A stretch of DNA of 64,000 nt from Macrostomum lignano (GCA_002269645.1 NIVC01001291.1:1-64000), one strand, 5' to 3'. Shown: positions 30,848 through 61,982, counted from the stretch's first letter. Program-made: numbers and translations. The notes: a model not told the origin generated them from the sequence alone.

Positions 30848-33257
30848 GCCGCCTCACCGCAGCGGCAGCCGCAGCGCAGGTGCCGTTTCTGCGAGAAGAA
30901 GCCGCAGCTTCGTCGGCCAAAAACCGGCCACGCAGTCTGCCGCGACTGCTTCTTCTGGGCATTCGAAGCTGAAACTCACGACACGATCGTCTCCAGCCGG
31001 ATGTTCTCGCCCGGCGAACGCGTCGCTATTGGCGCATCCGGCGGCAAAGATTCCACTGTGCTGGCCTACCTGTTGAAGACGCTAAATGAGAGGCACAATT
31101 ATGGGCTGGATCTGCGCCTGCTGGCTATTGATGAGGGCATTGCCGGTTATCGGGACGATTCTCTGGACGCTTTGAGGCGCACAGAGGTTTGTCATCGTTT
31201 GAACTCAGTGTAGCATTTTGTATCAAATCCAGGTGTCACCTTTGAAATCCAGGTGTCACCTTTGAAATCCAGGTGTCACCTTTGAAATCCAGGTGTCACC
31301 TTTGAAATCCAGGTGTAACCTTTGAAATCCAGGTGTCACCTTTAAAATCCAGGTATCACTTTGAAATCACTTTTGAAATCCAGGTGTCACCTTTGAAATC
31401 CAGGTATCACCTTTGAAATCAATGTGTCACATTTGAACTCAATGTTTCACCTTTGAAATCCAGGTATCACCTTTGAAATCAATGTGTCACCTTTGAAATC
31501 CAGGTATCACCTTTGAAATCACTTTTGAAATCCAGGTGTCACTTTTGAAATCACTTTTGAAATCCAGGCATCACTTTTGAAATCACTTTTGAAATCCAGG
31601 TGTCACCTTTGAAATCCAGGTATCACATTTGAAATCCAGGTGTCACATTTCAAATCCAGGTGTCACCTTTGAAATCCAGGTACCACCTTTGAAATCCAGG
31701 TGTCACTTTTGAAATCCAGGTGTCACTTTTGAAATCCAGGTATCACCTTTGAAATCCAGGTGTCACGTTTGAAATCCAGGTATCACCTTTAAAGTCCAGG
31801 TATCACCTTTGAAATCCAGGTATCACCTTTAAAGTCCAGGTATCACCTTTGAAATCCAGGTGTCACCTTTAAAGTCCAGGTATCACCTTTGAAATCCAGG
31901 TGTCACCTTTGAAATCCAGGTACCACCTTTGAAATCCAGGTGTCACTTTTGAAATCCAGGTGTCACTTTTGAAATCCAGGTATCACCTTTGAAATCCAGG
32001 TGTCACGTTTGAAATCCAGGTATCACCTTTAAAGTCCAGGTATCACCTTTGAAATCCAGGTATCACCTTTAAAGTCCAGGTATCACCTTTGAAATCCAGG
32101 TGTCACCTTTAAAGTCCAGGTATCACCTTTGAAATCCAGGTATCACCTTTGAAATCCAGGTATCACCTTTAAAGTCCAGGTATCACCTTTGAAATCCAGG
32201 TGTCACTTTTGAAATCCAGGTATCACATTTGAAATCCAGTTGTCACTTTTGAAATCCAGGTGTCACCTGTGAAACCCAGGTATCGCCTGTGAAACCCAGG
32301 TATCGCCTGTGAAACCCAGGTATCACCTGTCCAACCCAGGTATCACCTGTGAAACCCAGGTAATACCTTTTAAAGTCCAGGTATCAACTTCACAATTTAG
32401 CTTATGGATTGAATCAAAAGTTAAATAAAATTAGAAAGCTACTTACGCTGTTTATTATTAAGTAGTATAACAGGCTTTTTCCATCAAATTCTACAGGTCA
32501 GCCTCGGCCTGCCCCTCACAATCTTCACCTATCGCGACCTGTACGGCTGGACAATGGACGAAGTTGTCCGGGCCGCTGGCCGGCGCAGCAATTGCACCTT
32601 CTGCGGCGTGTTCCGTCGCCAGGCCCTGGACAGAGGCGCCGGTCATCTTAAAGCTGACAAACTGGCCACCGGTCACAATGCTGACGATGTGGCCGAGACC
32701 GTCGTGATGAACCTCCTGCGTGGCGACGCGGCCAGGCTGTCCCGCTGCGCCGACGGCGTCACCCACACGGGCGGCGGCCTGCCGGCCCGCTGCAAGCCGT
32801 TAAAGTACGCCTACGAGAAGGAAATCGTGCTCTACGCCTACTTCAAACGGCTTGACTACTTCGCCACCGAGTGCCTGTACGCCCCGGCTGCCTACAGGGG
32901 CCACGCCAGGGCTCTGGTGAAGGATCTGGAGCGGGCCAGGCCGGCCGCTCTGCTGCACATTATCCAGGCCGCTGAACAGATTCGATTCCGTACCGATGCT
33001 CGAATGCCGGAGCTGGACACCTGCCGGTTGTGCGGCTACGTCAGCAGCCAGCCAGTGTGCAAAGCCTGCGTGCTGCTGGACGGCTTGAACTCCGGCAATC
33101 CCGGCTGGCTGTTGGCAAATCCTCGGCTTGTTCGGCTAAGCAACAGCAGCAGCGAATGCTTACTGATGCTGGGCGTAATAGCGCCCAATGCTGCGGTAGC
33201 GCCGGCGCCAGGCGCGGCTGCTCGGGATCGGCATGCGCTGCGGCGGCGGATTCTTGA
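30848..33257 (+). CDS. CTU1: Cytoplasmic tRNA 2-thiolation protein 1; exons 30848-31186 and 32497-33257; no in-frame ATG at the start; apparent 1-nt deletion at ~33100
   Basis: CxxC...CxxC N-terminus, PP-loop [33 protein letters not shown]-terminal CxxC/CxxC. Phase-0 splice GAG|GTTTGT..CTACAG|GTC. Confidence 0.93.
31228..32390 (+). repeat. CTU1 intron minisatellite, 20-bp unit TGAAATCCAGGTGTCACCTT (~55 copies)
   Basis: Tandem units with a higher-order duplicated block. Confidence 0.95.
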
Positions 33258-33329
33258 TGACTTTTTAAATCTGTTCTTTGGAATCGCCTTCTAGTGTTTT
33301 GAGAGTCTATTTTGGGAATAGCTATCTCA

Positions 33330-34325: not shown

Positions 34326-34389
34326 TCCCTTATAATTCCGCTAAAGTATTTCTTGACCTCACACTTTCCCCGCTGCACTTCCAGCCGTC

Positions 34390-35452
34390 ATGGGCGCCTA
34401 CAAGTTCATCTCGGAGCTGTACCGCAAAAAGCAATCCGATGTGATGCGCTTCATTTTGCGCCTGCGCTGCTGGCACCTGCGCCAGAGGCACGTGATCCAC
34501 CGGGCCACCAAGCCCACCCGGCCGGACAGGGCCCGCCGCCTTGGCTACAAGGCCAAGCAGGGCTTCGTCATCTACCGGATCCGCATCCGCCGCGGCGGTC
34601 GCAAGCGCCCGGTGCCCAAGGGCGCCACCTATGGCAAGCCGGTGCACGAGGGTGTCAACCAGTTGAAGAACCAGCGCAGCCATCAGGCCATCGCCGAGGT
34701 CAGGGTCACGTGTGACCGGGGAAAGGGCACTCTATGGCTGAAGAACAGGGGGTGGCGCCACTCTATGGCTGAAGAACAGGGGGTGGCGCCACTCTATGGC
34801 TGAAGAACAGGGGGTGGCGCTACTCTATGGCTGAAGAACAGGGGGTGGCGCCACTCTATGGCTGAAGAACAGGGGGTGGCGCCACTCTATGGCTGAAGAA
34901 CAGGGGGTGGCGCCACTCTATGGCTGAATAACAGGAGGTGGCGCCACTCTATGGCTGAAGAACAGGGGGTGGCGCCACTCTATGGCTGAAGAACTCGGGG
35001 GGGGGAGGGTGGCGGCACTCTATGACTAAAGAACAGAACGGGGTGGCACTAGGCTACAACTGAAGCGGGATGATAAAGGGATAAATGAATTTGATAAGCG
35101 GCTTCCATTCTGCAATTCAATGCCCAAACCAATTCCCACACATCAGGAGCGAATCGGCCGCAAGATCGGCGCCCTCCGCGTGCTGGGCTCCTACTGGATC
35201 GCGCAGGACTCCACCTACAAGTTCTACGAGGTGATCCTGGTGGATCCCAACCACAAGGCCATCAGGCGCGACCCGCGCATCAACTGGATCTGCACCGCCA
35301 AGCACAAGCACAGGGAGATGCGCGGCCTGACCAGCTCTTCTAAGAAGAGCCGCGGACTGGGCAAGGGTCACCGGTTCCACCAGACCATTGGCGGTAGTCG
35401 GCACGCATTCTGGCGCAAGAACAACTTCCTGAGGATGCGCAGGAAGCGCTAG
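34390..35452 (+). CDS. RPL15: 60S ribosomal protein L15; exons 34390-34698 and 35147-35452 (204 aa)
   Basis: [21 protein letters not shown]...; the spliced length of 615 nt matches the canonical 204 aa. AATAAA at 35563. Confidence 0.98.
34728..35050 (+). repeat. RPL15 intron minisatellite, 31-bp unit CTCTATGGCTGAAGAACAGGGGGTGGCGCCA
   Basis: ~9 tandem units. Confidence 0.95.
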
Positions 35453-38282: not shown

Positions 38283-41200
38283 GCGGAGATGAGCTCAAAG
38301 GGGCCGCCAGTCGATGGCCCCCAGGAGCTGCGCCACTACTTCTCCTCGTGCAAGGTCACCAATGCTAGTGACGCCGATGGTGCGTCTAGTAAGTTCGAGC
38401 TTAGGACAATGGAGAATATGGAACTGCTCAGTCGGTTGATTGCATAGCCGGCATGGCCCTCCTTCAGCGATGCCTGTTCGGTGACGATAGTAGGATGATT
38501 CTGGGCAATGGCCGGATCTGACTTGGGATATAAGCGTCTTCTGCCGACGAGAGCCCGTTCCTGGGGACACCGGGGTGCGGTATACCTCCAGGTGTCCTGG
38601 CAGGTCGGGCTGATACCTAAGGTGATGGTAGATCCGCTCCTTGGAGGCGGGGAGCGAGATAAGCACCTGATCTTGACAGAGAGTCGCTGCGACTTTCGCT
38701 TCTGTGTCGACGAGTTCATTGCCGTGCACTCCCGAGTGCCCGGGCACCCAGAGCAGCGTAAGTTTGGTCCTATGGGCCGCGGTCACGAGGAGGGTCTTCG
38801 CTAGCTCGAGCCTAACGTTCAGCGTGGGCCGGTCGGCTTGGATGGCGGTAATGGCACTTTGACTGTCCGTGAGGATGGCGGCGCAGGCGGGAGCGGAATC
38901 AATGATGTCCTGAAGCGCGAGAGTAATGGCTTGAAGCTCGGCCTCGTAGGAATTGCACCATCGGCCAGCTGCCGCGTGCCCTCTGCGGATGATGGTGCCG
39001 TCTTCTTTGTGGAGGAGGATCCAGGCCGATCCCCCGTTGGTGGTGCCTCCTGAGGCTGAACCGTCAGTGAAGTAGAGGGCTGCGTCGGGACAACGCTGCT
39101 CAATCGCGGAGAGCACTGCCTCGGTCGCAGATCCTTCATGCTCGGGGAGTTTGGTGTACATCTGCACCCCGCAATCAACCAGCGAGTCCCATGGGGGATT
39201 GCGGATCGTAGGTATAGGCAGACGCGGGAGAGGGATCATAGCGTTGCAGATGGCTCTGGCTTGCTCTCGTAGCCCTTTGTTGGCTGCTAGCCGGATGTTG
39301 AGTTGCCTGTCGCAAATCTGCCGGAACGGATCGTCGGCCGGGCGGCGGTTTGCTTTCTCGTAGGCCATCAGGGCCCTACGGCGGGCTTCGAGGCTGATCG
39401 GACTGACGTTGGTTTCCATATAGATGGCTTCCACCGGTGTCGAGCGTGGCAATCCCGTGATGGCTCTGAGGGCTTCTCTTTGAGCGCGGTCCAGGTCGTC
39501 GAGGCGGGTACTGGACAGCCATGGAGTCCAGGCAGCAGCAGCGTGCCAGACCACAGATTCGACGAGTGCTCGATAAACCCGGAGGAGCAGGGCGCGGTCC
39601 CAGCCCCATTCGCGATGGGCGAGCGCGCGGATGATGGCGGTTCTGCGTGCCATCTTCTCTTTGACCGCGTTGGAGTGCTTATCGAAAAGGAGGCTATGGT
39701 CTATCCACACCCCGAGGAACTTCAGTTCTTTCTTGGAGGGGATCGAGTGGCCGTTCAGCGAGAGGTGAAGAGCGCGGTCGCGGTCGGCGCGGTCCCTGCT
39801 GTAGAGGCAGCATTCGGTCTTGGATGGATTAAGGTCAATGCGCAGGTGATCTGCCCACTGTCCGATCTTCTGGAGCGCATCTTGAGTGCGAGCAAGAAGC
39901 TCTCGGATGTCGCGGCCCGTCGTCCAGAGTGCGATGTCGTCCGCGTAGCCGCTATATTCGACATTCGCCGTCATGTAGTCGGACCAGGCATTAACGTAGA
40001 GAAGGAAGAGGGCCGGCGAGCTGACAGCCCCTTGCGGGACTCCCTCACGGAGCCGGCGCCATTTTCCGGTGGTCGCGCCGATTCTAACGGCAATTTGGCG
40101 GCCCTCAAGGAAACTGTCAAACCATTTGACCATACAGGCGGGAAGGCCCTCGTCCATCATCCGGGCGAGGAGTCGGGCCCTCCAGACTCTGTCAAACGCT
40201 CTGGAGCAGTCTATGAGCACGGCAAGGGTTTTGAGATGCGGGTTGCGCTCCCAACCGTCTTGAATGGCCTGGACCAGGCGGGCGACCTGTTCTTCGCAGC
40301 CCCGGCCTCGTTGGAAGCCGGCTTGCCATAGTTGAATCTTTCTATGTTGCTCCAGCCAGTAGTAGAGGCGGTCCAGAATGAGTCTTTCGAGAATTTTGCA
40401 GCAGATGGAGGTGAGGCTAACTGGTCTGTAACTGCTTCGATCCTTGGGGTCCTTGCCATCCTTGAGCAGAGGAATGATGATAGCTTGCTTCCAGGGGCCA
40501 GGGCAGTGTCCAGTGCGCCAGCAGCGGTTGAAGACCTTGAGCCACGCGGCTCTCCAGCGGTCGGGCAGGAGCAGAAAGAACGCTGCTTCAATGCCATCGG
40601 GGCCGCATTTCTTGCTGGGATCAAGTCTGTCGAGAGCTCTGAGCAGTTCACCCTCGGTGAAGTCACGGCGATAGTTGTCGTCGTCCGCCTCATAGGAGGC
40701 TAGGCGAGTAGCCGTTTGCTCCTTGAATTTGCGGTGGGTGGCGTCGTGCTTCAGAGTGCTAATGTCTTCATAATATCTGCCGAAGGCGTTGGCTTTGTCC
40801 TTGTCGGTACAGAGTTCCTTTCCATTTACGACCAGGTTCTCGTTAGGGTGGGCCGCTTGTTTGCCGTTGCTAAGGCATTTGATGGTGTTCCAGACCTTTT
40901 TGGGGTCCTCGGATTCGGCCATTTTTCCGATAAAGTCCTTCCAAAATTCATGTTTCTTTTCGCCGCAGCGCTTGATAAGCTCCTGGCTTTTAGCGCGCCA
41001 TTCCTCGGGAGGGGCGGCGGCTTCACGGAGAGCGTTGCGATGATCACGCAGTTTGCTCAGCTCGTCATCCCAGTACGGTTTATTTCTGATGGAGACCTTT
41101 TTTCGCGGGATGGCCAGTTCTGCCGCTTTGAGCATACCTTTGGTAAGCCGGCTGACCTGTTTCTTGATGGAACCTCGGTTGAGGTGTTCACAGTTTTCCT

Positions 41201-41626
41201 CAAGAATGGACCTGAACTGAGACCAGTCGGCTTTCTTCCAAGCCCAGTGCAATCTGGGTGTCACTCGAAGAGTGTCCCGAGCAGTGCTGATAGAGATCAG
41301 GATAGGTTTGTGATCCGATCCAAGTTCATTGAGAGTGGACCAGGTGCAGCGGGGGGCGATCTCCTGGCTGGCAATGGAGAGGTCGGGAGCGCTGGAGCGC
41401 CCTGAGTGACGGTCGATGCAGGTGTGAGCTCCGGAGTTGAGTATCCGGTAGTTGGTAGAGGAACACCAGTTGATAAGGCAACGGGATTGAGGCAGGCTGT
41501 CCCGGCCCTGATCGGCGTCGCTCCCCCAGGATGGGTGGTGCAGGTTAAAGTCGCCCGTGATGATCTCGCGGTGGTGGCAGCGGAGCCAGCTGTCGACACT
41601 AGGATGTTCGCGGTGGTCCTCGCCTT

Positions 41627-43630: not shown

Positions 43631-43720
43631 AGGTCCCGGGTTGAGCTCGATATCACCGGCCCTGAGCAGCAGCGTGGGAAGGTGGCGGGCCTCACTGCCG
43701 AGCTTCCCGTGGTCCAGGTA
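43631..43720 (-). other. 2A-like StopGo (ribosomal skipping) peptide
   Basis: ...EARHLPTLLLRAGDIELNPG|P fits D(V/I)ExNPGP and lies directly upstream of PHD1. Confidence 0.85.
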
Positions 43721-43783
43721 CGCGCTGCAGAGAAAGATAACAATCCAAGTAACCAAAAGCACGAGGGACGTAGTGTCCGTTTT

Positions 43784-43892
43784 CCGGCGCTCTTCGACCC
43801 CTTCCCAAGAGAGGTGCTCCCCTCCGCGACGAAGACGCGGCGCCGGGTAGGAGCTGCGGGCGAGCCGCAGGCTGCGCGTAAAGCACAGCGGG
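43784..43892 (-). ncRNA. Candidate HDV-like ribozyme / structured 5' leader of the Ingi-like element
   Basis: Manual fold: P2 CCGGCGC/GCGCCGG, P3 CGCG/CGCG around L3 UCUUCGU, P4 ACCUCU/AGGGGU, J4/2 CGAA. P1 (GCUCCU/GGGAGC) is imperfect. Two extra hairpins upstream. Confidence 0.4.
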
Positions 43893-47090: not shown

Positions 47091-49863
47091 TCAGTCAACA
47101 AGCAGCCGAAAGCGAGAGGCGCACTGCTGCCCAGCCAGTCTGGCGAACCGCCGCAGCCCAGCAGAGTCCGAGGAGTCGCCAACCTCAGCGTCATCATCGC
47201 CACCCCCGAGGTCGGCATAGAGACCTCTGAGCTGACCGGCCTCAAGCCGACAGCGATAGTCTCTGTCAAATGGAAGCCAGCGCAGAGCGATGGGGCACAT
47301 GATCTGCGCCGGCTGAAACTCCGCCTTGTAGGCCAGCTTAACCGACAGCGGGGAGTATGAGCCCATGGTGTAGTGCCTCAGCCTCGGGTGCCCCTGCAGG
47401 CGGCGCAGCTGCAGCAGGGCGCTGACCTTGCCCAGCTGCAGGCGCTTGAAGGCCGGGTCGAAAAAGAAGTAGGCGGAGGAGACCGTGCTGAGGGAGTGTA
47501 GTTGAGGGGCGATTCTCAGTGTGGTTGAGGGGCGATTCTCAGTGCGGTTGAGGGGCGATTCTCAGTGTGGTTGAGGGGCGATTATCAGTGTGGTTGAGGG
47601 GCGATTCTCAGTGTGGTTGAGGGGCGATTCTCAGTGTGGTTGAGGGGCGATTCTCAGTGTGGTTGAGGGGCGATTCTCAGTGTGGTTGAGGGGCGATTCT
47701 CAGTGTGGTTGAGGGGCGATTCTTAGTGTGGTTGAGAGGCGATTCTCAGTGCGGTTGAGGGGCGATTATCAGTGTGGTTGAGGGGCGATTCTCAGTGTGG
47801 TTGAGAGGCGATTCTCAGTGTGGTTGAGGGGCGATTCTCAGTGTGGTTGAGGGGCGATTCTCAGTGTGGTTGAGGGGCGACTCTCAGTGTGGTTGAGGGG
47901 CGATTCTCAGTGTGGTTGAGGGGCGATTCTCAGTGTGGTTGAGGGGCGACTCTCAGTGTGGTTGAGGGGCGATTCTCAGTGTGGTTGAGGGGCGATTCTC
48001 AGTGTGGTTGAGGGGCGATTCTCAGTGTGGTTGAGGGGCGATTCTCAGTGCGGTTGAGGGGCGATTCTCAGTGTGGTTGAGGGGCGATTCTCAGTGTAAT
48101 TGAGGGGCGATTCTCAGTGTGGTTGAGGGGCGATTCTCAGTGTGGTTGAGGGGCGATTCTCATTGTGGTTGAGGGGCGATCCTCAGTGTGGTTCAGGTGC
48201 GATTCTTAATGTGGTTGAGGGGCGATTCTCAGTGTGGTTGAGGGGCGATTCTCAATGTGGTTGAGGGGCGATTCTCAGTGTGGTTGAGGGGCGATTCTCA
48301 ATGTGGTTGAGGGGCGATTCTCAGTGTAATTGAGGGGCGATTCTCAGTGTAATTGAGGGGCGATTCTCAGTGCGGTTGAGGGGCGATTCTCAGTGTGGTT
48401 GAGGGGCGATTCTCAGTGCGGTTGAGGGGCGATTCTCAGTGTGGTTGAGGGGCGATTCTCAGTGTGGTTGAGGGGCGATTCTCAATGTGGTTGAGGGGCG
48501 ATTCTCAGTGTAATTGAGGGGCGATTCTCAGTGTAATTGAGGGGCGATTCTCAGTGCGGTTGAGGGGCGATTCTCAGTGCGGTTGAGGGGCGATTCTCAG
48601 TGCGGTTGAGGGGCGATTCTCAGTGTGGTTGAGGGGCGATTCTCAGTGTAGATGAGGGGCGATTCTCAGTGTGGTTGAGGGGCGATTCTCAGTGTAGATG
48701 AGGGGCTGAGGGGAGTTTTTAACTGGCTGAGTGGCAGCTTTGAGAATGGCAGAGGCAGCTGCTAGTGTGGTCGCTCTGTCCCCGCCAACAAACCTGTCAA
48801 GAATGTCGATGACGTCAACGCCGATCAGGCGGCCATCCAGCAGCAGCTGGGAATGGTAGGATCCCTTCGGCCACTGGACGTCGGTCTCAGCCTCCGCCGC
48901 CTCCGCCGCCAGCGGACTGAGGCAGAGAAATCGGCGGAACTTGGCCTCGCCGCAGTCGGCCGGGGAGTCGCCGTGGACGGCGCACTGGTAGGCGGAGTAG
49001 CAGGCGTGTCCGGAGCTGATGGCCAGCTGGCTGTCCGACGGCACCAGGCGCCACAGGAGGCGACCGCGGCCGCCTGGACCGCCAATCATCAGCGGGTCGA
49101 CGAGTTCGGCTAGGCTGGGCGCCGACTGGCGGCGCTGGCGAAGCTCGCGACGACGGCGCCAACGGTTGGCGCGCTCGGCGAGCAGAGCGTCGGCGGATTG
49201 GCCGAGGGCGCCGGCTCGGGCGCGCAGTGCATCGAGTCCGGCTGACCAGCGCTTGTAGCGGGCCTTTCCGGGGCGCATCCGGCTGCTAATAAAATGTAAA
49301 ATATTTTCACTTCCGGTTTGATAGTTGGTTCCACTTCCGGTTTGATAGTTGGTTCCACTTCCGGTTTGATAGTTGGTTTCACTTCCGGTTTGATAGTTGG
49401 TTTCACTTCCGGTTTGATAGTTGGTTTAACTTCCGGTTTGATAGTTGGTTTCACTTCCGGTTTGATAGTTGGTTTCACTTCCGGTTTGATAGTTGGTTTC
49501 ACTTCCGGTTTGATAGTTGGCTCCCCTTCCGGTTGGCAAATCGGAATCACCAGCGGGCCCAACTGGCGCGCTGCCAAACAGAGCGCCGGCGAATCGCCTC
49601 AGACAGCGCCGCTGGCTCCGGCTAGGCCGGAACGCATCGACCAGGTGACGCATTGGGAACTTGGCGCAGCAGGTCAGGTCCGGCCGCAGCCGGTACACCC
49701 TGCTGGCGCTTCGACGCCAGCCGCGGTTTAACAGGGCCTCGTAGTCAGCGACAGTCAGCCGGCTGAGTGACACAATGTCGGAGAACCGACCGACGCCGCC
49801 GCAGAACTCGCAGCGAAGCGGCTGGAGCCGCCGACTGTAGTGATAAACACCGACCGATGCCTG
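47091..49863 (-). CDS. ATE1: Arginyl-tRNA-protein transferase 1; exons ~49863-(donor unresolved, ~49580), 49281-48794, 47487-47091
   Basis: RCEFC..YEALLNRGWRRS..TCC (N-domain); YQCAVHGD..FRRFLCLSPL, GSYH..LDGRLIGVDVIDIL|STVSSAYFFFDP..LGKVSAL..MGSY..KLAYK (C-domain). Confidence 0.9.
47503..48707 (+). repeat. ATE1 intron minisatellite, 23-bp unit TGAGGGGCGATTCTCAGTGTGGT (~52 copies)
   Basis: Tandem units filling almost the whole intron. Confidence 0.95.
49307..49535 (+). repeat. ATE1 intron minisatellite, 24-bp unit CACTTCCGGTTTGATAGTTGGTTT (~9 copies)
   Basis: Tandem units; the ATE1 reading frame stops inside them. Confidence 0.9.
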
Positions 49864-50517
49864 CTGAAAATGTCAATTGACATGCTTTTTAGACTACTGA
49901 TAGTAGACAACGCTGATATGCACCACAAGATTTATCCACAGGCGAACAGGCGCTTTAGCATGAGAAACATTACCTTAACCATGATTCCCCCCAAAGTATT
50001 GGAATTCGAAGGTCGATTATACGGTCATGTGTTTGCAGGAACGGGCGCAACGCCCCACAACCAGCGCACACACGGGTGTACAGCGGCCCTGACTGTCTAA
50101 TCATCCGGCATGTACACTCTCTCTGTGCCTTGGTGGCCTGCCCTCACGGCCAATTTTCGTGCACATCAGCCCCAAATGAATGTGGCCGCGCAAGGAGTCG
50201 AACCAGGGGCCGCGAAACTCGTGGGTTTGAAACCATGATTCCCCCCTCAGAATGAATATTGGAATACCAATTGTCAACTTATCCGCCTTGACAAGGAAAA
50301 AATCAATAATCCACAACCGAAAACGAGTCATAATGGTATTCAACGCAGTCAAAAAGTACAAATAAAATAGTGAGAAGTGAGGCAATTTTATTTAAACAGT
50401 TGCAAAAATCAAGCTATCATCATAGTAGTTGTAAGTAGAGCCGTCCAAATTAATCAATAAAATTCAAAGATGGAAATGCAGATCATTATCAGTAACTAAT
50501 TAAGTGATAAATAATAA

Positions 50518-52037
50518 CTAACTGGCCAGCCTGCTCAGCAGGAGTCTCACGGTGTCGTAGACGCCAAGAAACACGGCGCCGCCGATGGCAATCATGGCCG
50601 TTCGCGGCGCCGCCCCGGCGAACAGGCCCGGCAGGCCGCGCTCCGAGTGCACCGTGGACAGGGCGGCCAGCACGCTGCCGGAGGCCAGGCGGTCGTGGCT
50701 TGAAATGACAGGAGTTGAGAAGAGTTTCTCTGTGTTAAATTGCTTGCTGTACACTGGGTTGTAGGGAATTCAGATGGAGCATGGGGAATTCGTTTAAGCT
50801 GAGGGAAATTCAACCAGACTGCGGGCAATTCAGCCTGCCTACAGAGGGAATTCCGTCAGCCTACGGGGGGAATTCAGTCAGCCCACTGAGGGAATTCAGT
50901 CAGCCTACGGGGGGGAATTCAGTCAGCCTACGGGGGGGGGAATTCAGTCAGCCTACTGGGGGAATTCAGTCTGCCTACTGGGGGAATTCAGTCAGCCTAC
51001 GGGGAGGGGAATTCAGTCAGCCTACTGGGGGAATTCAGTCAGCCTACTGGGGGAATTCAGTCAGCCTACGGGGGGGGGGAATTCAGTCAGCCTACGGGGG
51101 GATTCAGTCAGCCTACGGGGGGAATTCAGTCAGCCTACTGGGGGAATTCAGTCAGCCTACGGGGGGGAATTCAGTCAGCCTACGGGGGGGATTCAGTCAG
51201 CCTACGGGGGGGGGGAATTCAGTCAGCCTACGGGGGGGGGAATTCAGTCAGCCTACGGGGGGGAATTCAGTCAGCCTGCTCTGCTCACCTCACAACCCCA
51301 AGGACACGCGCTTCTACTGGGGGAATTCAGTCAGCCTACGGGGGGGAATTCAGTCAGACTGTGGAGAATTCATTCAGCCTACAGGGGAATTCATTTAGCC
51401 TACGTGGGAACTCAGCCAATCTATGGGACACTAAGGTCTCGACCCGCAGTGCTCACCTGGACGCCAACATAATCCTAGTCTTGGCCACGTCCAGCGGGGT
51501 GGTGAGGAAGGCGGCCAGCCCGCCAGCGGCGAACCCGGAGGCGGCGGAGGTGGCGGGCTTGTCAGCCCAGCCCGGCCCGGCCAGAGCCTTCAAGGCCTCC
51601 CACAGCGGGAACTGCAGGCTGGCGAAGGGTAGCTCGCGGATGATGGTGCTGCGAAAGCCTCGGTAGAGTCCCGCCGGGCCCTCCTCGCGAAGGCAGTCGG
51701 CGAAGATCCGGTAGGGCCGACGGCCCAGCCGGTCGGTCTGGGCGCGCTGCTTCACCACCTCGCAGGGCACGCGGACGAGGCAGGCGGCGGCTTCGCCGAG
51801 GCAAGCGGCGACCGGCACAGGCAGTCGGCGCCGCTTGCCAGTGTCGTAGGTGACGAAGAAGACGGCGGCGCCCGGCATGGACAGCAGGGAGACAACGGAG
51901 ACGCCCTGGAAGAGGCCGCGCAGGCCGCCCGAGGACCAGAAGCCGGCGCTGGACTGGGCGCGGGTCTTCAGGGTGTCCAGCGGGTACAGGGACAGGTCCA
52001 CTAGCAGGCCCGCTGCGGCGCCGCTCAGCAGGGCCTC
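50518..52037 (-). CDS. SLC25A26: Mitochondrial S-adenosylmethionine carrier; exons 52037-51457 and 50698-50518; no in-frame ATG at the start
   Basis: Carrier signatures YPLDTLKTR, VPCEVVKQR, TPLDVAKTR; LYRGFRSTIIRELPF and GLFAGAAPR are typical of PET8/SAMC. Phase-2 splice. Confidence 0.9.
50810..51405 (+). repeat. SLC25A26 intron minisatellite, G(n)AATTCAGTCAGCCTAC, ~22-25 bp
   Basis: Tandem units with a variable G run. Confidence 0.9.
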
Positions 52038-52214
52038 CTGGCGCGGGAGATTTTGATGGGGAATTAATGGGGAGGAGAGTCTGGATCAGGAGTCTGAGCT
52101 GCATTCCCTATCAGCTGTTGGTTGTTCTTTTCTGGGCAGAACATATTGTAGTAGGAAAAATTTCACGAACCAGACCTAGATAGAGATAGAGACTAGACAG
52201 GGTGGCAGAGACAA

Positions 52215-53565
52215 GGACTGGATCAAACAGGACACACAGACCAGACTGGATCAGACAGGACACACAGACCAGACTGGATCAGACAGGACACACAGACCAG
52301 ACTGGATCAGACAGGACACACAGACCAGACTGGGTCAGACAGGACACACAGACCAGACTGGATCAGACAGGACACACAGACCAGACTGGATCAGACAGGA
52401 CACACAGACCAGACTGGATCAGACAGGACACACAGACCAGACTTGGTTAGGCAGGACACACAGACCAGACTGGATCAGACAGGACACACAGACCAGACTG
52501 GATCAGACAGGACACACAGACCAGACTGGATCAGACAGGACACACAGACCAGACTGGGTCAGACAGGACACACAGACCAGACTGGATCAGACAGGACACA
52601 GACCAGACTGGATCAGACAGGACACAGACCAGACTGGATCAGACAGGACACACAGACCAGACTGGATCAGACAGGACACACAGACCAGACTGGATCAGAC
52701 AGGACACACAGACCAGACTGGGTCAGACAGGACACACAGACCAGACTGGATCAGACAGGACACACAGACCAGACTGGATCAGACAGGACACACAGACCAG
52801 ACTGGATCAGACAGGACACACAGACCAGACTGGATCAGACAGGACACACAGACCAGACTGGATCAAACAGGACACACAGACCAGACTGGATCAGACAGGA
52901 CACACAGACCAGACTGGATCAGACAGGACACACAGACCAGACTGGATCAGACAGGACACACAGACCAGACTGGGTCAGACAGGACACACAGACCAGACTG
53001 GATCAGACAGGACACACAGACCAGACTGGATCAGACAGGACACACAGACCAGACTGGATCAGACAGGACACACAGACCAGACTGGATCAGACAGGACACA
53101 CAGACCAGACTGGATCAAACAGGACACACAGACCAGACTGGATCAGACAGGACACACAGACCAGACTGGATCAGACAGGACACACAGACCAGACTGGATC
53201 AGACAGGACACACAGACCAGACTGGGTCAGACAGGACACACAGACCAGACTGGATCAGACAGGACACACAGACCAGACTGGATCAGACAGGACACACAGA
53301 CCAGACTGGATCAGACAGGACACACAGACCAGACTGGATCAGACAGGACACAGATCAGACTGGATCAGACAGGACACACAGACCAGACTGGGTCAGACAG
53401 GACACAGACCAGACTGGGTCAGACAGGACACAGACCAGACTGGGTCAGACAGGACACACAGACCAGACTGGATCAGACAGGACACACAGACCAGACTGGA
53501 TCAGACAGGACACACAGACCAGACTGGATCAGACAGAACACACAGACTAGACTGGATCAGACAGT
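52215..53565 (+). repeat. 28-bp minisatellite CAGACAGGACACACAGACCAGACTGGAT (~48 copies)
   Basis: Highly homogeneous array upstream of SLC25A26. Confidence 0.95.
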
Positions 53566-53811
53566 TTAATGCAGACAGTCTGAGATATTGAATGACAAAC
53601 TCTGAGACCAACTGCTTTGACATTTCTAAAAAAATGAACCAAAAACTTCGGAGGTCTGAAGTCTACAAAATGTATTTGGGGTATGCAATGCAGAGCTGTG
53701 TAATTGAGCAAACAAAATGCCATCACGTGACACTGAATACAAGAGTAATGGCGAGTTGCAATCTATAAACAAAACAGTAGTTATGCAAGTCACGTTTGTA
53801 CTTATTGAAAA

Positions 53812-53992
53812 TTATTGAGGATAAAGATCCCATAACAATTATTTGAGGATAAATATCCCATAATCACTATTGAGGATAAAGATACCATTTAATTATTGAG
53901 GATAAAGATCCCATAATAACTATTGAGGATAAAGATCACATAACAATTATTGAGGATAAAGATCCCATAATCACTATTGAGGATAAAGATCC
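53812..53992 (+). repeat. ~27-bp minisatellite TATTGAGGATAAAGATCCCATAACAAT
   Basis: ~6 units. Confidence 0.85.
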
Positions 53993-54160
53993 CAAAAATC
54001 TTCACAATACCCTATTTTATTTACCCAAATAGCCAAAAGTCCCTATGAATACATTATTTAGATTCGATACGTGCATTTCTAAAATAAATGCGATTATAAT
54101 CCCATTCGATAATCACAATGAAAGCAATATTAATAATCAGTTAAAAGGGGAAAATTATCC

Positions 54161-57100
54161 CTAGCTCGACATGTCGAGCAGGCGCGCTCCGGCCCTGCGC
54201 ACAGCGGGATCCCGGAGCCAGTTGGAGTCGCGCAGACCTTCGGCCAAGTCGGCCAGCATCCGACAGTCGGCAGCCGCGGCGGAAGCGGCCGGAGCAGTCA
54301 GCCGGGCGAGGGTCTCGGCCACCAGCAGAGCCAGGCCGGGCGACGCCACGGTTGCCATTGGCAACAGGAGACGGCGGAGGACGGCGGCGCAGTCGGTCGG
54401 TTTGGCGAGCCACGACTGGCACTGCGACTGGGGGATGCGGGTGGGGGCGCGACTGGCAGCTGAGTGGCAATCTATGGATTAGTGGAAAAATACCCCCAAG
54501 GAATCAGAAAACAAGAGAAAATATCTAACAAATACCCCCTCAATCGATGAATGAATTCAAAGAAAATACCCCCCTCAATCAATGAGTGAATTCAAAGAAA
54601 ATACCCTCTCAATCAATGAGTGAATTCAAAGAAAATACCCCTCAACCAATGATTGAATTCAAAGAAAATACCCCCTTAATCAATGATTGAATTCAAAGAA
54701 AATAACCCCCTCAATCAATGAGTGAATTAAAAGAAAATAACCCCCTCAATCAATGAGTGAATTCAAAGAAAATACCCCCCTCAATCAATGAGTAAATTCA
54801 AAGAAAATACCCCCTCAATCAATGAGTGAATTCAAAGAAAATAACCCCCTCAATCAATGAGTGAATTCAAAGAAAATACCCCCTCAATCTATGATTGAAT
54901 TCAAAGAAAATACCCCCCTCAATCAATGAGTGAATTCAAAGAAAATACCCCATTAATCAATGAGTGAATTCAAAGAAATACCCCTCAATCAATGAGTGAA
55001 TTCAAAGAAAATACCCCATTAATCAATGCGTGAATTCAAAGAAAATAACCCCCTCAATCAATGAGTGAATTCAAAGAAAATACCCTCTCAATCAATGAGT
55101 GAATTCAAAGAAAATACCCCCTCAATCAATGAGTGAATTCAAAGAAAATAACCCCTCAATCAATGAGTGAATTCAAAGAAAATACCCCCTTAATCAATGA
55201 TTAAATTCAAAGAAAATACCCCCTCAATCAATGAGTAAATTCAAAGAAAATACCCCCTCAATCAATGAGTGAATTCAAAGAAAATACCCCATTAATCAAT
55301 GAGTGAATTCAAAGAAAATACCCTCAATCAATGAGTGAATTTAAAGAAAATACCCCATTAATCAATGCGTGAATTCAAAGAAAATACCCCCTTAATCAAT
55401 GAGTGAATTCAAAGAAAATACCCCATTAATCAATGAGTGAATTCAAAGAAAATACCCCCTCAACCAATGATTGAATTCAAAGAAAATACCCCATTAATCA
55501 ATGCGTGAATTTAAAGAAAATACCCCTCAACCAATGATTAAATTCAAAGAAAATACCCCCTCAATCAATGATTGAATTCTAAGAAACAACCCGAACCACA
55601 TGAGCGCAGAGGAAGTTCCCCCGGCACAAAGATCCCATCCGCACAGTTCCTCACCCTGACAGCGCTGATCAGCGGCTCCACCTGAGAGCCGGCGGCCGCC
55701 GACCCCTCCAGTCGGCAGCGGAGGTGCAGCAGCGCCAGGCCGAGCGCCTGCAGTCGGGCGTCGACTTTGCCGACCAGCCAATCGTCAAGCCGGTCTCCAT
55801 CAGCAGCCTGGGCGGCCAGCGTGGCCCGACAGTCCAGCAGGCCTCGGTCGCACAGCAGCTCCAGGGTCTGCAGGCAGCGGCGCCATCGATGGGAACCGCA
55901 GCGCTGATCCAGCTGGGATTGAACGTATTGAGGGGTCAATCAATGTAATTGGTTTTATCGCTTCTAGCACTGGCGCCAAAAACACCTGGGCATTGAGGGT
56001 TGGCGCCAAAACACCTGACCATTGAGGTGGGCGCCAAAAACACCTGATCATTCAGGGTTGGCGCCAAAAACACACCTGACTCATCACAATTGGCGCCTAA
56101 AACACACCTGACCCATCAAGGTTAGCGCCAAAAACACACCTGACCGATCAAGGTTGGCGCCAAAAACACACCTGACCGATCAAGATTGGCACCTAAAACA
56201 CACCTGACCGATCAAGGTTGGCGCCAAAAACACACCTGACCCTTCAAGGTTGGCGCCAAAAACACACCTGACCGATCAAGATTGGCACCTAAAACACACC
56301 TGACCGATCAAGGTTGGCGCCAAAAACACACCTGACCGATCAAGGTTGGCGCCAAAAACACACCTGACTCATCACAATTGGCGCCTAAAACACACCTGAC
56401 CCATCAGGGTTGGCGCCTAAAACACACCTGAGCTATCAGGGTTGGCGCCATGAACACACCTGACCCATCAAGGTTGGCGCTAAAGCACACCTGAGCTCTC
56501 AGGGTTGGCGCCATGAACACACCCGACCCATCAGGGTTGGCGCCAAGAACACACCTGAGCTATCAGGGTCGGCGCCATGAACACACCTGAGCTATCAGGG
56601 TTGGCGCCATGAACACACCTGAGCTATCAGGGTTGGCGCCATGAACACACCTGACCCATCAGGGCTGGCGCCATGAACACACCTGAGCTATCAGGGTTGG
56701 CGCCATGAACACACCTGAGCTATCAGGGTTGGCGCCATGAACACACCTGACCCATCACGGCTGGCGCCATGAACACACCTGACCCATCAGGGCTGGCGCC
56801 ATGAACACACCTGAGCTATCAGGGTTGGCGCCATGAACACACCTGAGCTATCAGGGTTGGCGCCATGAACACACCTGACCCATCACGGCTGGCGCCATGA
56901 ACACACCTGACCCATCAGGGCTGGCGCCATGAACACACCTGAGCTATCAGGGTTGGCGCCATGAACACACCTGAGCTATCAGGGTTGGCGCCATGAACAC
57001 ACCTGAGCTATCAGGGTTGGCGCCATGAACACACCTGACCCATCAGGGCTGGCGCGATGAACACACCTGAGCTATCAGGGTTGGCGCCATGAACACACCT

Positions 57101-60100
57101 GACCCATCAAGGTTGGCGCTAAAGCACACTTGAGCTATCAGGGTTGGCGCCATGAACACACCTGACCCATCAGGGCTGGCGCCATGAACACACCTGACCC
57201 ATCAGGGCTGGCGCCATGTACACACCTGAGCTATCAGGGCTGGCGCCAAGAACACAATCTAAACTGAAAGCCGAGACTCACCAGACTCAAGCAGATCAAA
57301 CCCGCGGCGGCATCCTGCGGTTTCGTCAGCCGCGGCACCAACGAGCCACCGATGGCAGCGTTGGCGGTCAGATAGGCGAACCCAGCCTCCCCGCCATAGC
57401 AACCAACGATGAAGAGGACGCAGATCGCGGCAGATTCTTTTGTCAACGCTGCCAGCTCGGCTCCTAGGGATTCGAACCCGGTACCAACCCGGCCGTTAGC
57501 CCTTAGCAGAGGGCCGCAGAGGGCAACCAGGCGGACTCGGTCGGACAGTCGGCCAGCAGCCAGGCGGCCGCAGGCCTCCAACGCGGCCAGGCCAGTCGAG
57601 GGCGCGGCAGCGTCAGTGGAAGCCGCCAGACCCTCGGCCAGACCGGAAATCGCCGAGTCCACTTCCGGTGTGTCGGGCAGCTGCTGACTGGCCGCGCAGG
57701 TGGCACCGAAGACTAGAAGCAGAGCGGCTGCCAGATCTGCGGCGCTGAGGCCTTCAAGGCTGCGTTAATTAGGGGAAAGGTGAGGAGTTAGCGAATTAGT
57801 GGGAATAGGAAACTCATAGTCTGCCACGCTACATATCGGCTTGGCCTTTTATATACCTGCCCCTTAATCCTAATTGTGACACCTGATCTTGCGATTCATT
57901 CCCTTCTACTCAACCCTCATCCCCCTCTGCCCGACCCTCATTCCCCCTCTGCCCGACCCTCATTCCCCCTCTGCCCGACCCTCATTCCCCCTCTGCCCGA
58001 CCCTCATTCCCCCTCTGCCCGACCCTCATTCCCCTCTGCCCGACCCTCATTCCCCCTCTGCCCGACCCTCATTCCCCTCTGCCCGACCCTCATTCCCCTC
58101 TGCCCTCTGCTCAGCTCTCATTTCCCCTCCGCTCACACCTCAATCCCCTCTGCTCACCCGTCGTCACCTCTGCTCAACTCTCATTAACCTCAGTTCACCT
58201 TTATTCGCTTCCCAAAGTCTCCCTTCAACCGCAGTCGCAGCCAACCCATTACTGTATCTCCCATGGCTCCGGGCCTTCCCTCGTCCCCAGCAGTGGCTCA
58301 CCAACGCGCAGCCTCATCCGGCACGAGTCGCATCAGCTCCAACCAGAATTTGGCGCCAAGCCGGACAGACTGGGCTGCGGCTGCGGCCAGAATCTGCGGC
58401 AGCAGCAGCAGCTGAGACGCATCGGCAGACTCGGAGCCGGCCGGTCCACAGTTCAAAGAGGCCACAATGCTGGCCTGAGCGACCGGGTCGTCGGAGGCGT
58501 TGGACAGCGACCGGGCAGCGGAGTCGGCCAGCAGGCCCGGATTGGCCGACAGGGCGGCGGCCACGAGCGGATGGGAGAGGATGGCCTGCGGATTTGATGA
58601 AATAATTTATAATAAAAGCCAGATGTGCTTTACCAGCTGGAAGCTTTACCAATTACCAGCTCGAAGGACGAACATTTACCAGCTCGAACATTTACCAGCT
58701 CGAAGATTTACCAGCTCGAAGATTTACCAGCTTGAAGCTTTACCGGCTCAAAGCTTTACCAGCTCGAAACTTTACCAGCTCTAAGATTTACCAGCTAGAA
58801 GCTTTACCGGCTCAAAGCTTTACCGGCTCAAAGCTTTACCAGCTCGAAGCTTTACCAGCTCTAAGATATACCAGCTAGAAGCTTTACCGGCTCAAAGCTT
58901 TACCGGCTCAAAGCTTTACCAGCTCGAAGCTTTATCAGCTCGAAGGTTTACCAGCTCGACGATTTGCCAGCTCGAAGCTTTACCAGCTCGGAGATTTACC
59001 AGCTAGAAGCTTTACCGGCTCAAAGCTTTACCGGCTCAAAGCTTTACCGGCTCAAAGCTTTACCGGCTCAAAGCTTTATCAGCTCGAAGGTTTACCAGCT
59101 CGACGATTTGCCAGCTCGAAGCTTTACCAGCTCGGAGATTTACCAGCTGGAAGCTTTACCTGCCCGATGATTTACCAGCTCGGAGATTTACCAGCTCGAA
59201 GCCTTACAAACTTGGAGCTTTATAAATTCGAATCACGAAGCTTAAAATGCTTTAAAAAGCAGAAAAAAACTAATTATCAACAATAAAACTGCAGGTAAGT
59301 CAGTCAAATAACCCCAATTCTTACCTGCACAATTGCGTCAGTCGACCGCCTGCCAGTCAGCTGGGTGCAGCAGCCAATCAGCTTAGCCAGGGTGTCAGCC
59401 GGGGCAGCCAGCAGCAGGGCTGGCAGCAGCGGGTCGTCGATGGCGCCGGGCCCGGCCTCGGCGGTGACCCGGTTGGCCAGGCGGACCAGGCCGGACTCGA
59501 TCCGCTCGGCAGCCAGGGCGGAGGCGTGCAGGCCCGGCGGCTGCTCGGCGGCCAGGTCGGGTGGCATGCCTGCGACCAGGCGGCAGTACAGCTCTGTCCA
59601 GGCGTTGGCCAGCTCACGAGACCGGCGCGACGAGGACAGCAGATCGGCGTTTCGACGTAGACGTGGCAGAATGTCGCACAGGCGGCCGAGGCAGCCCGCG
59701 TCGTGTAGGCGGCGGCACAGAGCAGGTAAGTCCAGGTGGGCCAGGCTGGCTGACAGCTGGCGAATCAGACTGCGAAGGGAAGGGGGCGCAGTTAGGTTTC
59801 GTTAAAATTTTTGCAGAGATTCGAGTTTCGACTTTCTAGGATTCTAAAATTCTAGGCACCGTAGGATTAGGGATCTGTATGATCCCAGTGGCTTGAGATC
59901 TCTAAGACTCATAATTAGGACAGATCCCTAATCCCGCTGGGATCATACAGATCCCTAATCCTACTGGGATCGTACAGATCCCTAATCCTACTGGGATCAT
60001 CCAGATCCCGAATCCTACTGGAATCATACAGATCCCTAATCCTACTGGAATCATACAGATCCCTAATCCTACTGGGATCATACAGATCCCTAATCCTACT

Positions 60101-61982
60101 AGGATCATACAGATCCGTAATCCTACTAGGATCATACAGATCCGTAATCCTACTGGGATCATACAGATCCGTAATCCTACTGGGATCATACAGATCCCTA
60201 ATCCTACTGGGATCATACAGATCCCTAATCCTACTGGGATCATACAGATCCCTAATCCTACTGGGATCATACAGATCCCAAATCCTACTGGGATCATACA
60301 GATCCATAATGCTACTGGGATCATACAGATCCCTAATCCTACTGGGATCATACAGATCCCTAATCCTGCTGGGATCATACAGATCCCTAATCCTGCTGGG
60401 ATCATACAGATCCCTAATCCTACTGGGATCATACAGATCCCTAATCCTGCTGGGATCATACAGATCCCTAATACTGCTGGGATCATACAGATCCCTAATC
60501 CTGCTGGGATCATACAGATCCCTAATCCTGCTGGGATCATACAGATCCCTAATACTGCTGGGATCATACAGATCCCTAATACTGCTGGGATTATACAAAT
60601 CCATATACCTAATGGAACCATACAGAACCCCAATCCAGGATTCTAAATATCTCTAACCGAGGATATTTAAGCTTGGCTGAATAACAAAGATTCCAAATCC
60701 CTACTAAAGAGTCTCAGAGACCCAAGCCCAGATTAGAAAAGCGCCCATGTCACCCAGCCAATAAATCTCACTCGAGATTCTCCAGCAGTTCATCGTCGCG
60801 ACTTCCTCCGCCACCGCCGCCAGCAGGCGGCAGGCAGCCGGCGAGCACATCGGCAGCCAGACCGGGCCGCTTGGCCAGCAGCCAGGTGAGCAGGCCGGCC
60901 TGACCGCCGGTTGGCAGGCAGGGCCGAAGCGCCGCGCCGCCGGCGTCCAGCAGCGGCGCCAACAGCTCAGCGCACAGCACACGGAGTCGGTCGACAAGCT
61001 CAAGCGACGTCGAGGACGTCGACAGCAGCGGCTGAAGGCCGGCAACGGCCTCGGCCAGCGGCAGGAGCTCGGCGAGGTCAGCCGAGGACAAGGCGGCCTC
61101 AATCCAGGCAGCCGGGTCAGCCTCCTCGCCGTCGGTGAGGTGCAGGAACTGGCGAATCAGGAAGTTTAAAATGTCGCCAGACAGGGCGGAGGCCAGCGGC
61201 TTCGGGGGCGGCGGCGAGCCGAGGAGACGCTGGGCGGTTTGGTAGACGCAGAGTAGGCTAGGCGCAGGGGCGGATGAAGGGGCGGATTCAGGAGCGGATA
61301 TCGAGGCGGGAAGCCGAGCAAACACGAGCAGGTGAGCGCGCACGACCGCCTCTTGAGCAGGTCGGCCCCAACGGGCGGGCAGAGCGCCGCCGAAGCGTAG
61401 CGCCGCTTCCAAAGCCAGCGGCCCGACAACCAGATCGGCAACTTTAGTCGCCGAATCCTTGGCCTCCTTAGCGGTAGGAGCCGGCGCAGCCAGGCGCCAG
61501 AGGCCGTCCAGCAAGCGCAGGGCCGGCAGAGATTCGTCCCGGTCCAAGCAGAACTGCAGCAGCTCGCGGAATCGGACACGGCGACGAGCGGCCGGCAGCA
61601 CGGAGAGGAACTGCAATAGCGGCCACGGGGAAGGGCTCAGTCAATGAGTTTCAAAGAACAGTCAGAATTTCTACGCTTTTCGACAGATTTTCTCACTGTC
61701 AGAGTTCGTCTACTGATAAGTAGAAAGTATAGAATGTGGCGTGAAAAGCTTGTATGGCTAGTTTAGATAGTTTACCACACTCTGCATAAGCTGTCAATCA
61801 GGCACCTGAAAGACGGTCGCGCAGTCGGCTGCCCAGCACAGCAGGCGGACTTGAACAGCGGCAGCCGTGGCGACGTCGGCGTCAGCGGCGGCTTCTCGCA
61901 GCGCGCTGGCCAGCAGGAGTCGCAGCGGGGAGGCAACTTCGGAACCGATCAGCTGCAGCAGCCGCCGGTCGAATTCGTCTGT
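54161..61982 (-). CDS. Uncharacterised Ala/Leu-rich helical (ARM/HEAT-like?) protein, ~950 aa; exons 61982-61806, 61610-60772, 59769-59325, 58585-58302, 57759-57282, 55912-~55600, 54471-54161
   Basis: Seven GC-rich segments join with consistent phases (0,2,0,2,0,1) at GT-AG sites. AATAAA at 54016-54021 (minus). Family not recognised; start unresolved. Confidence 0.7.
54520..55580 (+). repeat. Intronic 34-bp minisatellite GAATTCAAAGAAAATACCCCCTCAATCAATGAGT (~30 copies)
   Basis: Tandem units. Confidence 0.95.
55970..57250 (+). repeat. Intronic 32-bp minisatellite GGGTTGGCGCCATGAACACACCTGAGCTATCA (~40 copies)
   Basis: Tandem units with a gradient of variants. Confidence 0.95.
57905..58105 (+). 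repeat. Intronic 22-bp minisatellite CCCTCATTCCCCCTCTGCCCGA
   Basis: ~9 units. Confidence 0.9.
58630..59205 (+). repeat. Intronic 16-bp minisatellite AGCTTTACCAGCTCGA with higher-order variants
   Basis: Tandem units. Confidence 0.9.
59915..60600 (+). repeat. Intronic 27-bp minisatellite GGGATCATACAGATCCCTAATCCTACT (~25 copies)
   Basis: Tandem units, plus one inverted copy at 59861-59889. Confidence 0.95.

Follow-up and report, generated by a model that had tools for sequence, protein, structure and literature searches.

A 64,000-nucleotide (nt) stretch of the flatworm Macrostomum lignano, positions 1-64000 of scaffold NIVC01001291.1 (Mlig_3_7) in assembly GCA_002269645.1 (hereafter the window), contains three conserved genes, CTU1, ATE1 and SLC25A26, that probably take their start codon from the AUG at the end of a trans-spliced leader (SL). 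The sequence and the existing annotation lead us to give this reading a probability of roughly 0.78. The first-pass annotation had attributed an SL-donated initiator Met to four genes; the attribution stands for these three and fails for the fourth, here called the helical gene (Mlig018227g4), which has a genomic ATG in an upstream exon. Coordinates in the scaffold record equal window coordinates at the CTU1 locus, and a fetched locus (L002) shares 19,840 nt with the window with 0 mismatches.

M. lignano has a single 35-nt SL, CGGTCTCTTACTGCGAAGACTCAATTTATTGCATG, with the 3' end ...TTGCATG, and GTAAG comes next in the SL RNA gene (PMC8629364). The SL exon of this species thus ends in AUG right before the SL donor site, as the first-pass annotation had assumed from flatworm leaders in general. 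The terminal ATG of the Macrostomum SL has been described as the probable translation start codon (PMC10468722), and a terminal ATG is common to all SLs of parasitic flatworms (PMC12582326). A search of the whole window with Rfam at the gathering threshold returned zero RNA families, and thus no SL RNA gene within the window; the SL 3' end has one chance-level match there, with 3 mismatches, and its last 10-11 nt are without exact match.

According to the preferred explanation, both runs of genes in this locus would be transcribed as polycistronic precursors. Cleavage and polyadenylation at 3' ends would combine with trans-splicing, which would join the 35-nt SL to the AG before each downstream gene, to resolve these precursors. 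With a phase-0 acceptor directly before the first conserved residues and no genomic ATG, the SL-terminal AUG would become the first in-frame start of CTU1, ATE1 and SLC25A26, and mRNAs of these genes that escaped trans-splicing could yield no more than proteins truncated at the N-terminus. The other flatworm pattern is seen in RPL15 and the helical gene, with a genomic ATG 5-8 nt past the acceptor and the SL AUG out of frame.

Start sites of CTU1, ATE1 and SLC25A26

All four sites singled out in the first-pass annotation are AG acceptors in phase 0 that have no in-frame ATG in the contiguous upstream frame. The nearest upstream in-frame stop lies 4 codons away in ATE1, 17 in SLC25A26, 23 in the helical gene and approximately 130 in CTU1, and the first in-frame genomic ATG downstream is codon 52 in CTU1, 70 in ATE1 and 54 in SLC25A26. 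An ATG-less upstream frame together with the loss of key motifs on internal initiation characterizes CTU1, ATE1 and SLC25A26, and not the helical gene. The SL AUG is in frame at the three acceptors and out of frame at RPL15 and at the true first exon of the helical gene. Prepending ATG in silico yields M-AASPQ.. for CTU1, M-ASVGVY.. for ATE1 and MEALLSGAAAG for SLC25A26, as had been predicted, and the homologues of these three recognisable genes do begin within a few residues of the acceptors. The published M. lignano SL-acceptor motif, [T/C]TNCAG (PMC8629364), is fully matched at CTU1 (CTGCAG), the first ATE1 AG (TTTCAG), RPL15 and helical exon 1, while the SLC25A26 acceptor fits only its NCAG part. 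Alternative AGs near the acceptors of the three genes are all in phase 0 (CAG codons), so that the conclusion is independent of which AG is used.

The GenBank annotation of the assembly derives from a genome-guided transcriptome with open reading frames (ORFs) called by TransDecoder (PMC5730564). Transcript-derived coding sequences (CDSs) of CTU1, ATE1 and SLC25A26 that start at or just after the acceptors are Met-less and 5'-partial and have no upstream Met exon. Across the copies of the three genes, annotated starts fall at the acceptor or 6-36 nt 3' of it, never 5'. Because the CDS starts of SLC25A26 and ATE1 paralogs lie exactly on the predicted base, the three sites are more than chance. 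We infer that the annotated 5' ends are SL junctions and, by analogy with Schistosoma mansoni, that ribosomes would start at the SL AUG in CTU1, ATE1 and SLC25A26.

The whole gene block is present in at least three assembly copies, on scaffolds NIVC01001291, NIVC01001135 and NIVC01000678 (loci L001, L003 and L005 were compared). These copies are 91-98% identical, with a very variable number of minisatellite units, for example in the ATE1 repeat and in intron arrays. Such multiplicity fits the hidden polyploidy of M. lignano, whose DV1 line has duplicated chromosomes (PMC8629364). All three copies of CTU1, ATE1 and SLC25A26, those with intact ORFs included, have the same phase-0 acceptor without an ATG. 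A paralog substitution test from the acceptor to the first internal Met was underpowered: exon versus upstream differences number 4 versus 4 in ATE1 and 0 versus 7 in SLC25A26, and CTU1 shows only a 9-nt in-frame indel. The CTU1 insertion and the SLC25A26 counts (0/162 in exon 1 versus 7/180 just upstream) point weakly toward conservation of a coding frame.

CTU1 extends over 30848..33294 on the plus strand (exon 1, 30848-31186; intron with a 20-nt array, 31187-32496; exon 2 with the stop, 32497-33294). Its putative trans-splice acceptor, CTGCAG/G (30842-30848, AG at 30846-47; slashes mark splice junctions), places the first exon base at 30848 in phase 0. The exon starts with GCCGCCTCACC, for a predicted SL junction TTGCATG/GCCGCCTCACC. 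Further in-frame CAG acceptors, all in phase 0, occur at 30863 (CGGCAG from 30863), 30869 and 30875. The upstream frame is open for approximately 130 codons across a 28-nt array and is ATG-free, and the only ATG near the acceptor, at 30823, is out of frame. The protein contains the Pfam domains PP-loop and zn-ribbon_14, and a start at the internal Met (codon 52) would lose the CxxC..CxxC finger. PAA69784.1 (Mlig015290g2, partial, 375 residues) is the two-exon CTU1 model less its first 3 residues; its CDS starts at 30857, 9 nt 3' of the acceptor. The paralog PAA78570 (Mlig006805g2, partial) starts RQPQRRC, at the equivalent of window position 30863 and just past the next in-frame CAG. Because this copy has a 9-nt insertion, its CDS start lies 24 nt 3' of its first acceptor. 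The paralogous locus L005 retains the acceptor, and the in-frame insertion lies in the paralog between the acceptor and the first Cys.

In a search of 1.84 billion representative proteins, many full-length CTU1 homologues begin at query residues 7-11, and no M. lignano sequence was returned. Exon 1 alone as query recovered only proteins of <200 residues, 61-74% identical, and missed the M. lignano entries; the protein index seemingly favours targets of similar length, and full-length models did retrieve M. lignano entries. Ab initio CTU1 models in UniRef run through the acceptor into the repeat and are also without Met. At the other end of the gene, the C-terminal tail of the window copy (~33095-33294, plus strand) corresponds to the +1 frame of the paralog tail, and the paralog frame is closer to other CTU1 proteins. 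A 1-nt indel near 33100 or an error of the assembly there would account for the shift.

ATE1 (47091..49860, minus strand) comprises an N-terminal exon from 49860, a middle exon to ~48795 and a last exon from ~47482 to the stop at 47093-47091. Its tandem acceptor TTTTCAG/CAG/GCA, TTTTCAGCAG/GCATCGGTC (49860..49870, first exon base 49860), has both AGs in phase 0, and the predicted SL junctions are TTGCATG/GCATCGGTC at 49860 and TTGCATG/CAGGCATCG at 49863. An in-frame TGA is located 4 codons upstream of the acceptor (49875-73), which is conserved in all three copies. PAA71814 (partial, 588 residues), rebuilt residue by residue from locus L001, starts ASVGVY exactly at the equivalent of 49860, and the CDS of PAA78567 (Mlig018227g7, partial) begins 36 nt downstream of the acceptor. 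The window copy is represented in GenBank by PAA69787 (Mlig000756g2, 293 residues), a model that begins at an internal Met owing to the TAA in the 24-nt repeat of this copy. Pfam identifies ATE_N (residues 17-85) and ATE_C, and the alignment with human ATE1 (8tzv) begins by pairing residue 15 of Met plus exon 1 with its residue 21. The CxxC and CC motifs precede the first genomic Met, where a start would lose nearly all of ATE_N with its four Cys. The 24-nt minisatellite (49305-49534, minus strand) is in frame, and paralogs of 588 and 688 residues annotate it as coding, (ETNYQTGS)n. A phase-compatible donor, CT/GTTTGG (~49583), and an acceptor, TTATTAG/C or TTAGCAG/C (~49290), could splice this repeat out.

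SLC25A26 (50518..52037, minus strand) has two exons, 52037-51457 and 50698-50518 (TAG), separated by an intron with a 22-nt array. The acceptor CGCCAG/GAGGCC (52037..52042, first exon base 52037) is in phase 0, and a second in-frame AG lies 3 nt downstream. The predicted SL junctions are TTGCATG/GAGGCCCTG at 52037 and TTGCATG/GCCCTG at 52034, and the predicted N-terminal peptide is (M)EALLSGAAAGLLVDLSLYPLDTLK, an SL-encoded Met followed by the exon. The two-exon model is 100% identical to PAA71813.1 (BOX15_Mlig018227g2, partial) over 253 residues. This protein, from a paralogous scaffold, has EALLSG as its first residues, with the CDS start precisely on the counterpart of 52037, and the window copy itself, PAA69788 (Mlig000756g3, partial), begins with LLSG, 6 nt downstream of the acceptor. 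Pfam detects three Mito_carr repeats. In homologues, 5-11 residues precede the ALLSGAAAG helix; the first genomic Met falls after helix 1 and the PLDTLKTR signature, and a start there would remove both.

Operon context and genes with a genomic start codon

The genes form two same-strand runs, POLRMT (24090-28797), CTU1 and RPL15 on the plus strand, and the helical gene, SLC25A26 and ATE1 on the minus strand. The POLRMT-CTU1 spacer (28798..30847, plus strand) begins after the POLRMT stop at 28797 and measures 2050 nt, of which 1526 nt are 38-nt and 28-nt arrays. The helical-SLC25A26 spacer (52038..54160, minus strand) contains a 28-nt array at 52216-53564, a 27-nt array and an AATAAA at 54021, and the SLC25A26-ATE1 spacer (49861..50517, minus strand) is 657 nt long with an AATAAA at 50392. 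These AATAAA signals lie approximately 130-140 nt after the stops of the helical gene and SLC25A26. With arrays subtracted, the distances are ~520 nt for POLRMT to CTU1, ~390 for CTU1 to RPL15, ~590 for the helical gene to SLC25A26 and 657 for SLC25A26 to ATE1. Same-strand neighbours in M. lignano are assigned to an operon when their repeat-adjusted distance is at most 1 kilobase (kb), repeats being known to inflate operon spacers (PMC8629364), and all four spacers are within this limit. An exact protein look-up with the POLRMT last-exon ORF gave no record.

The annotation pipeline splits multi-gene transcriptional units only at peaks of SL reads or at poly(A) signals, and it numbers the resulting genes of a unit after a common prefix, as prefix.g1,.g2 and onward (PMC5730564). 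The prefix Mlig018227 is common to the helical gene (g1/g4/g5), SLC25A26 (g2) and ATE1 (g7), the window copies of SLC25A26 and ATE1 share the prefix Mlig000756, and CTU1 is a g2. The.g2,.g3 and.g7 names mark CTU1, SLC25A26 and ATE1 as parts of multi-gene transcriptional units, in which they are the downstream genes of operon-like units. The kb-scale tandem arrays reported upstream of three of the four acceptors are real (29789-30828, 52216-53564 and 62030-63272). Their designation as outrons fails for 62030-63272, which is an intron, and those before CTU1 and SLC25A26 are better described as repeat-inflated intercistronic operon spacers. 

In the window and its flank, three of the eight annotated genes seem to depend on the SL AUG, each of them a conserved housekeeping gene with a downstream place in an operon. 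This frequency is the sole sign of anything out of the ordinary. That the loss of genomic start codons is common rather than sporadic in M. lignano is a tentative and rather doubtful extension. The literature yielded no gene-by-gene or genome-wide analysis of SL-AUG dependence in this species, and per-gene SL tables for these loci were not found in the supplements of PMC5816591, PMC8629364 and PMC5730564.

RPL15 (34385..35452, plus strand), which belongs to the same plus-strand unit as CTU1, provides an internal control: its TTCCAG/ acceptor is followed after 5 nt by a genomic ATG, at 34390. An SL AUG joined at this acceptor is out of frame and opens a 20-codon upstream ORF (uORF) overlapping the real start; RPL15 therefore keeps its own ATG. 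The GenBank CDS (199 residues) starts FISELY at 34405, clipping the genomic ATG 15 nt upstream.

The helical gene likewise has an ordinary start. Exons 2-8 occupy 54161..61982 on the minus strand, and this 7-exon model equals residues 23-937 of PAA69789 (937 residues) at 100% identity. No ATG occurs from 61982 back to the in-frame stop. However, PAA69789, PAA78566 and PAA71812 extend 22-27 residues further at the N-terminus (..GMGLLHLNLERELQVIDGLIASLNISQ/TDEFDRR): PAA69789 has 22 extra residues, HLNLERELQVIDGLIASLNISQ, before TDEFDRR, and PAA71812 reaches GMGLLHLNLER. The missing exon 1 lies outside the window, ~4 kb upstream of 61982, at record positions 66108-66024 (L002 9982-10066). It follows the acceptor TATTTCAG/, ends CAG/GTAAGC and carries a genomic ATG at 66101 (MGLLHLNLER...) with an in-frame TGA two codons upstream. 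The predicted exon 1-exon 2 junction is TCGCAG/ACAGACGAA. On this sequence, 61982 (CTCTCAG/ACAGAC) is an internal cis-splice acceptor and not a gene start, which refutes the SL-AUG reading of the helical gene; since exon 1 lies upstream of 61982, the (CTGT)n array there is intron 1 and not an outron. An SL joined at the exon-1 acceptor has its AUG out of frame and gives an 18-codon overlapping uORF, and the genomic ATG 7 nt downstream opens the ORF.

The protein matched nothing in Pfam or among PDB sequences, and names from its UniRef cluster (MMS19, UDENN, kinase) are mutually inconsistent and were not adopted. Immediately past its genomic ATG, exon 1 has TTTATTGCA, which reproduces 9 nt of the SL 3' end. 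The three GenBank paralog CDSs (G-M-GLL.., LLHL.., HLNL..) differ in their start points, which lie in this stretch or beyond it, and the trimming of SL sequence from reads may have shortened their 5' ends.

Competing explanations

Several observations weigh against an SL-supplied start. The annotated 5' ends are imprecise, scattering 0-36 nt 3' of the AG, and no annotated CTU1 start falls on 30848 itself; the site used in that gene could be 30848, 30863, 30869 or 30875, all in phase 0. As the RPL15 and helical CDSs clip real ATGs, a "partial" flag alone is no proof of a missing ATG. Neither the Met-plus-exon proteins nor an SL-encoded peptide was found in a collection of 15 billion proteins, exact look-ups of Met plus SLC25A26 and Met plus CTU1 included. 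The ATE1 repeat of the window has GAA changed to TAA in one unit (49428-49426), in a repeat that the paralogs translate, and the window copies (the ATE1 TAA, the frameshifted CTU1 tail) may be decaying or carry assembly errors. Finally, a candidate ATE1 mini-exon, ATGGTTAAG/GTAATG, is conserved in all three copies.

This mini-exon (ATG GTT AAG/GTAATG, 49974..49982, minus strand), which the first-pass annotation had named as a possible objection, is indeed present in the window and both paralogs and has a usable phase-0 donor; a 113-nt intron would join it to the acceptor as MVK-ASVGVY. More generally, cis-spliced upstream mini-exons might supply the ATG, lying unseen beyond the arrays in the case of CTU1 and SLC25A26. 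Many acceptors of parasitic flatworms are used by both cis- and trans-splicing (PMC12582326), and the helical gene illustrates that an acceptor resembling a gene start can be internal. A cis-spliced ATG exon was indeed found there, but none is present in any transcript-derived CDS of the other three genes. The ATE1 mini-exon in particular is missing from every annotated CDS, and among the CDSs of the three copies of each gene the best-resolved ones begin exactly at the acceptor and are flagged partial. Its conservation is uninformative in copies that are 91-98% identical overall. It would also be placed downstream of the SLC25A26 poly(A) signal, within the operon spacer, where it falls in one copy of a 254-nt direct duplication that includes ATGGTT, and no ATG with a phase-0 donor occurs in the 186 nt that separate the array from the acceptor of SLC25A26. 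We consider an upstream cis-spliced start improbable.

The Met-less starts could instead be annotation artefacts, in which 5'-incomplete models hide an ordinary upstream start or the use of the first internal AUG. The scatter of GenBank 5' ends and the clipped ATGs of RPL15 and the helical gene agree with this view, but the genome itself, annotation aside, has no in-frame ATG from the upstream stop to the conserved N-terminal residues. The ATE1 acceptor follows an in-frame TGA by just 4 codons, initiation at an internal AUG would cost the proteins conserved motifs that their function requires, and two of the annotated CDSs start at the very base that follows an AG/ acceptor. We consider such an artefact very unlikely. 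Least to be expected is that the window copies are decaying duplicates in a recently polyploidised genome, the missing ATGs reflecting pseudogenisation. The in-frame TAA in the ATE1 repeat, the frameshifted CTU1 tail and the duplicated chromosomes of DV1 (PMC8629364) fit this proposal, yet the same ATG-less phase-0 acceptor occurs in all three copies, intact ORFs included; this identity marks the arrangement as ancestral and functional, rather than as damage to a single copy.

Comparison with known systems and other features of the locus

Use of the SL AUG as a start codon has been known in flatworms since 2006, when Cheng et al. described more than 40 S. mansoni cDNAs that need it (as reported in PMC9851317 and PMC12582326). 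CTU1, ATE1 and SLC25A26 would thus be new instances and no new mechanism. As in those S. mansoni mRNAs, the leader terminates in AUG, the acceptor joins the ORF in phase 0, a genomic ATG is lacking and the N-terminus would depend on trans-splicing; other trans-spliced genes keep their own ATG with the SL AUG out of frame, as RPL15 and the helical gene do here. In contrast to the parasitic trematode, M. lignano is a free-living macrostomorph with a different SL sequence, and its three genes are downstream cistrons of repeat-inflated operons, known here from sequence and annotation.

The SL-resolved operons already described in M. lignano (Wudarski et al. 2017, PMC5730564; Ustyantsev & Berezikov 2021, PMC8629364) share with this locus the organism, repeat-adjusted spacers of less than 1 kb, repeat-inflated spacers, unit prefixes with.gN names and housekeeping genes. 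The accessible sections of those papers cover boundaries and prevalence, whereas ATG-less genes and the phase of the SL AUG are not reported there. The ORFs detected by slORFfinder (PMC9851317) also obtain their start codon from the leader and are also missed or truncated by standard annotation, appearing here as "partial"; they come from nematodes, Oikopleura and trypanosomes and are mostly non-AUG, whereas here the main conserved ORF would need a canonical AUG. 

SL2-type operons of C. elegans are similar in having polycistronic precursors and 3'-end formation coupled to SL trans-splicing at short distance, but M. lignano has a single SL without SL1/SL2 specialisation, and its spacers reach ~2 kb through minisatellites. 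To our knowledge, nematode SLs neither end in AUG nor supply the initiator.

The locus matters chiefly for annotation and for the view taken of flatworm trans-splicing. If the SL AUG serves as proposed, PAA69784, PAA69788/PAA71813 and PAA71814 are probably full-length proteins minus an SL-encoded Met, and probably not fragments. Gene finders that require a genomic ATG would mis-call such genes; the 293-residue ATE1 model is one example here, and the ab initio CTU1 predictions extending into the repeat are another. If the arrangement held genome-wide, with the phase-0 ATG-less class above chance, thousands of GenBank "partial" M. lignano proteins would be complete but for the SL-encoded Met, and a large part of the core proteome could be translated only after trans-splicing. 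The locus pairs both flatworm solutions, a required in-frame SL AUG (three genes) and a genomic AUG (RPL15 and the helical gene), and this contrast could help to study how the start codon is chosen on SL-capped mRNAs, in a flatworm amenable to transgenesis.

The direct duplication in the SLC25A26-ATE1 spacer is found at 49977-50010 and 50231-50264, at a spacing of 254 nt, with 16 nt exact (AACCATGATTCCCCCC), and it encloses a tRNA T-arm-like stretch, GGTTCGACTCC. Together, these sequences suggest a short retroelement insertion with a target-site duplication. A tRNA-derived short interspersed element (SINE) was considered for this spacer and rejected, as ARAGORN predicted no tRNA and only the 254-nt direct duplication is demonstrable.

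Elsewhere in the window, remnants of non-long-terminal-repeat retrotransposons occupy 38295-43981 (minus strand) and 41557-42459 (plus strand). Their ORFs encode 989 residues (reverse transcriptase and RNase H) and 430 residues (PHD finger and endonuclease/exonuclease/phosphatase), and a further RNase H ORF lies on the opposite strand. A long ORF at 8316-11030 (minus strand; 904 residues as listed) has a DUF4062 match and weak matches to STAND/NACHT-type NTPases. The first 14 kb also contain a RING finger ORF at 4394-5371 and an Ig-domain ORF at 13105-13929, both on the plus strand.

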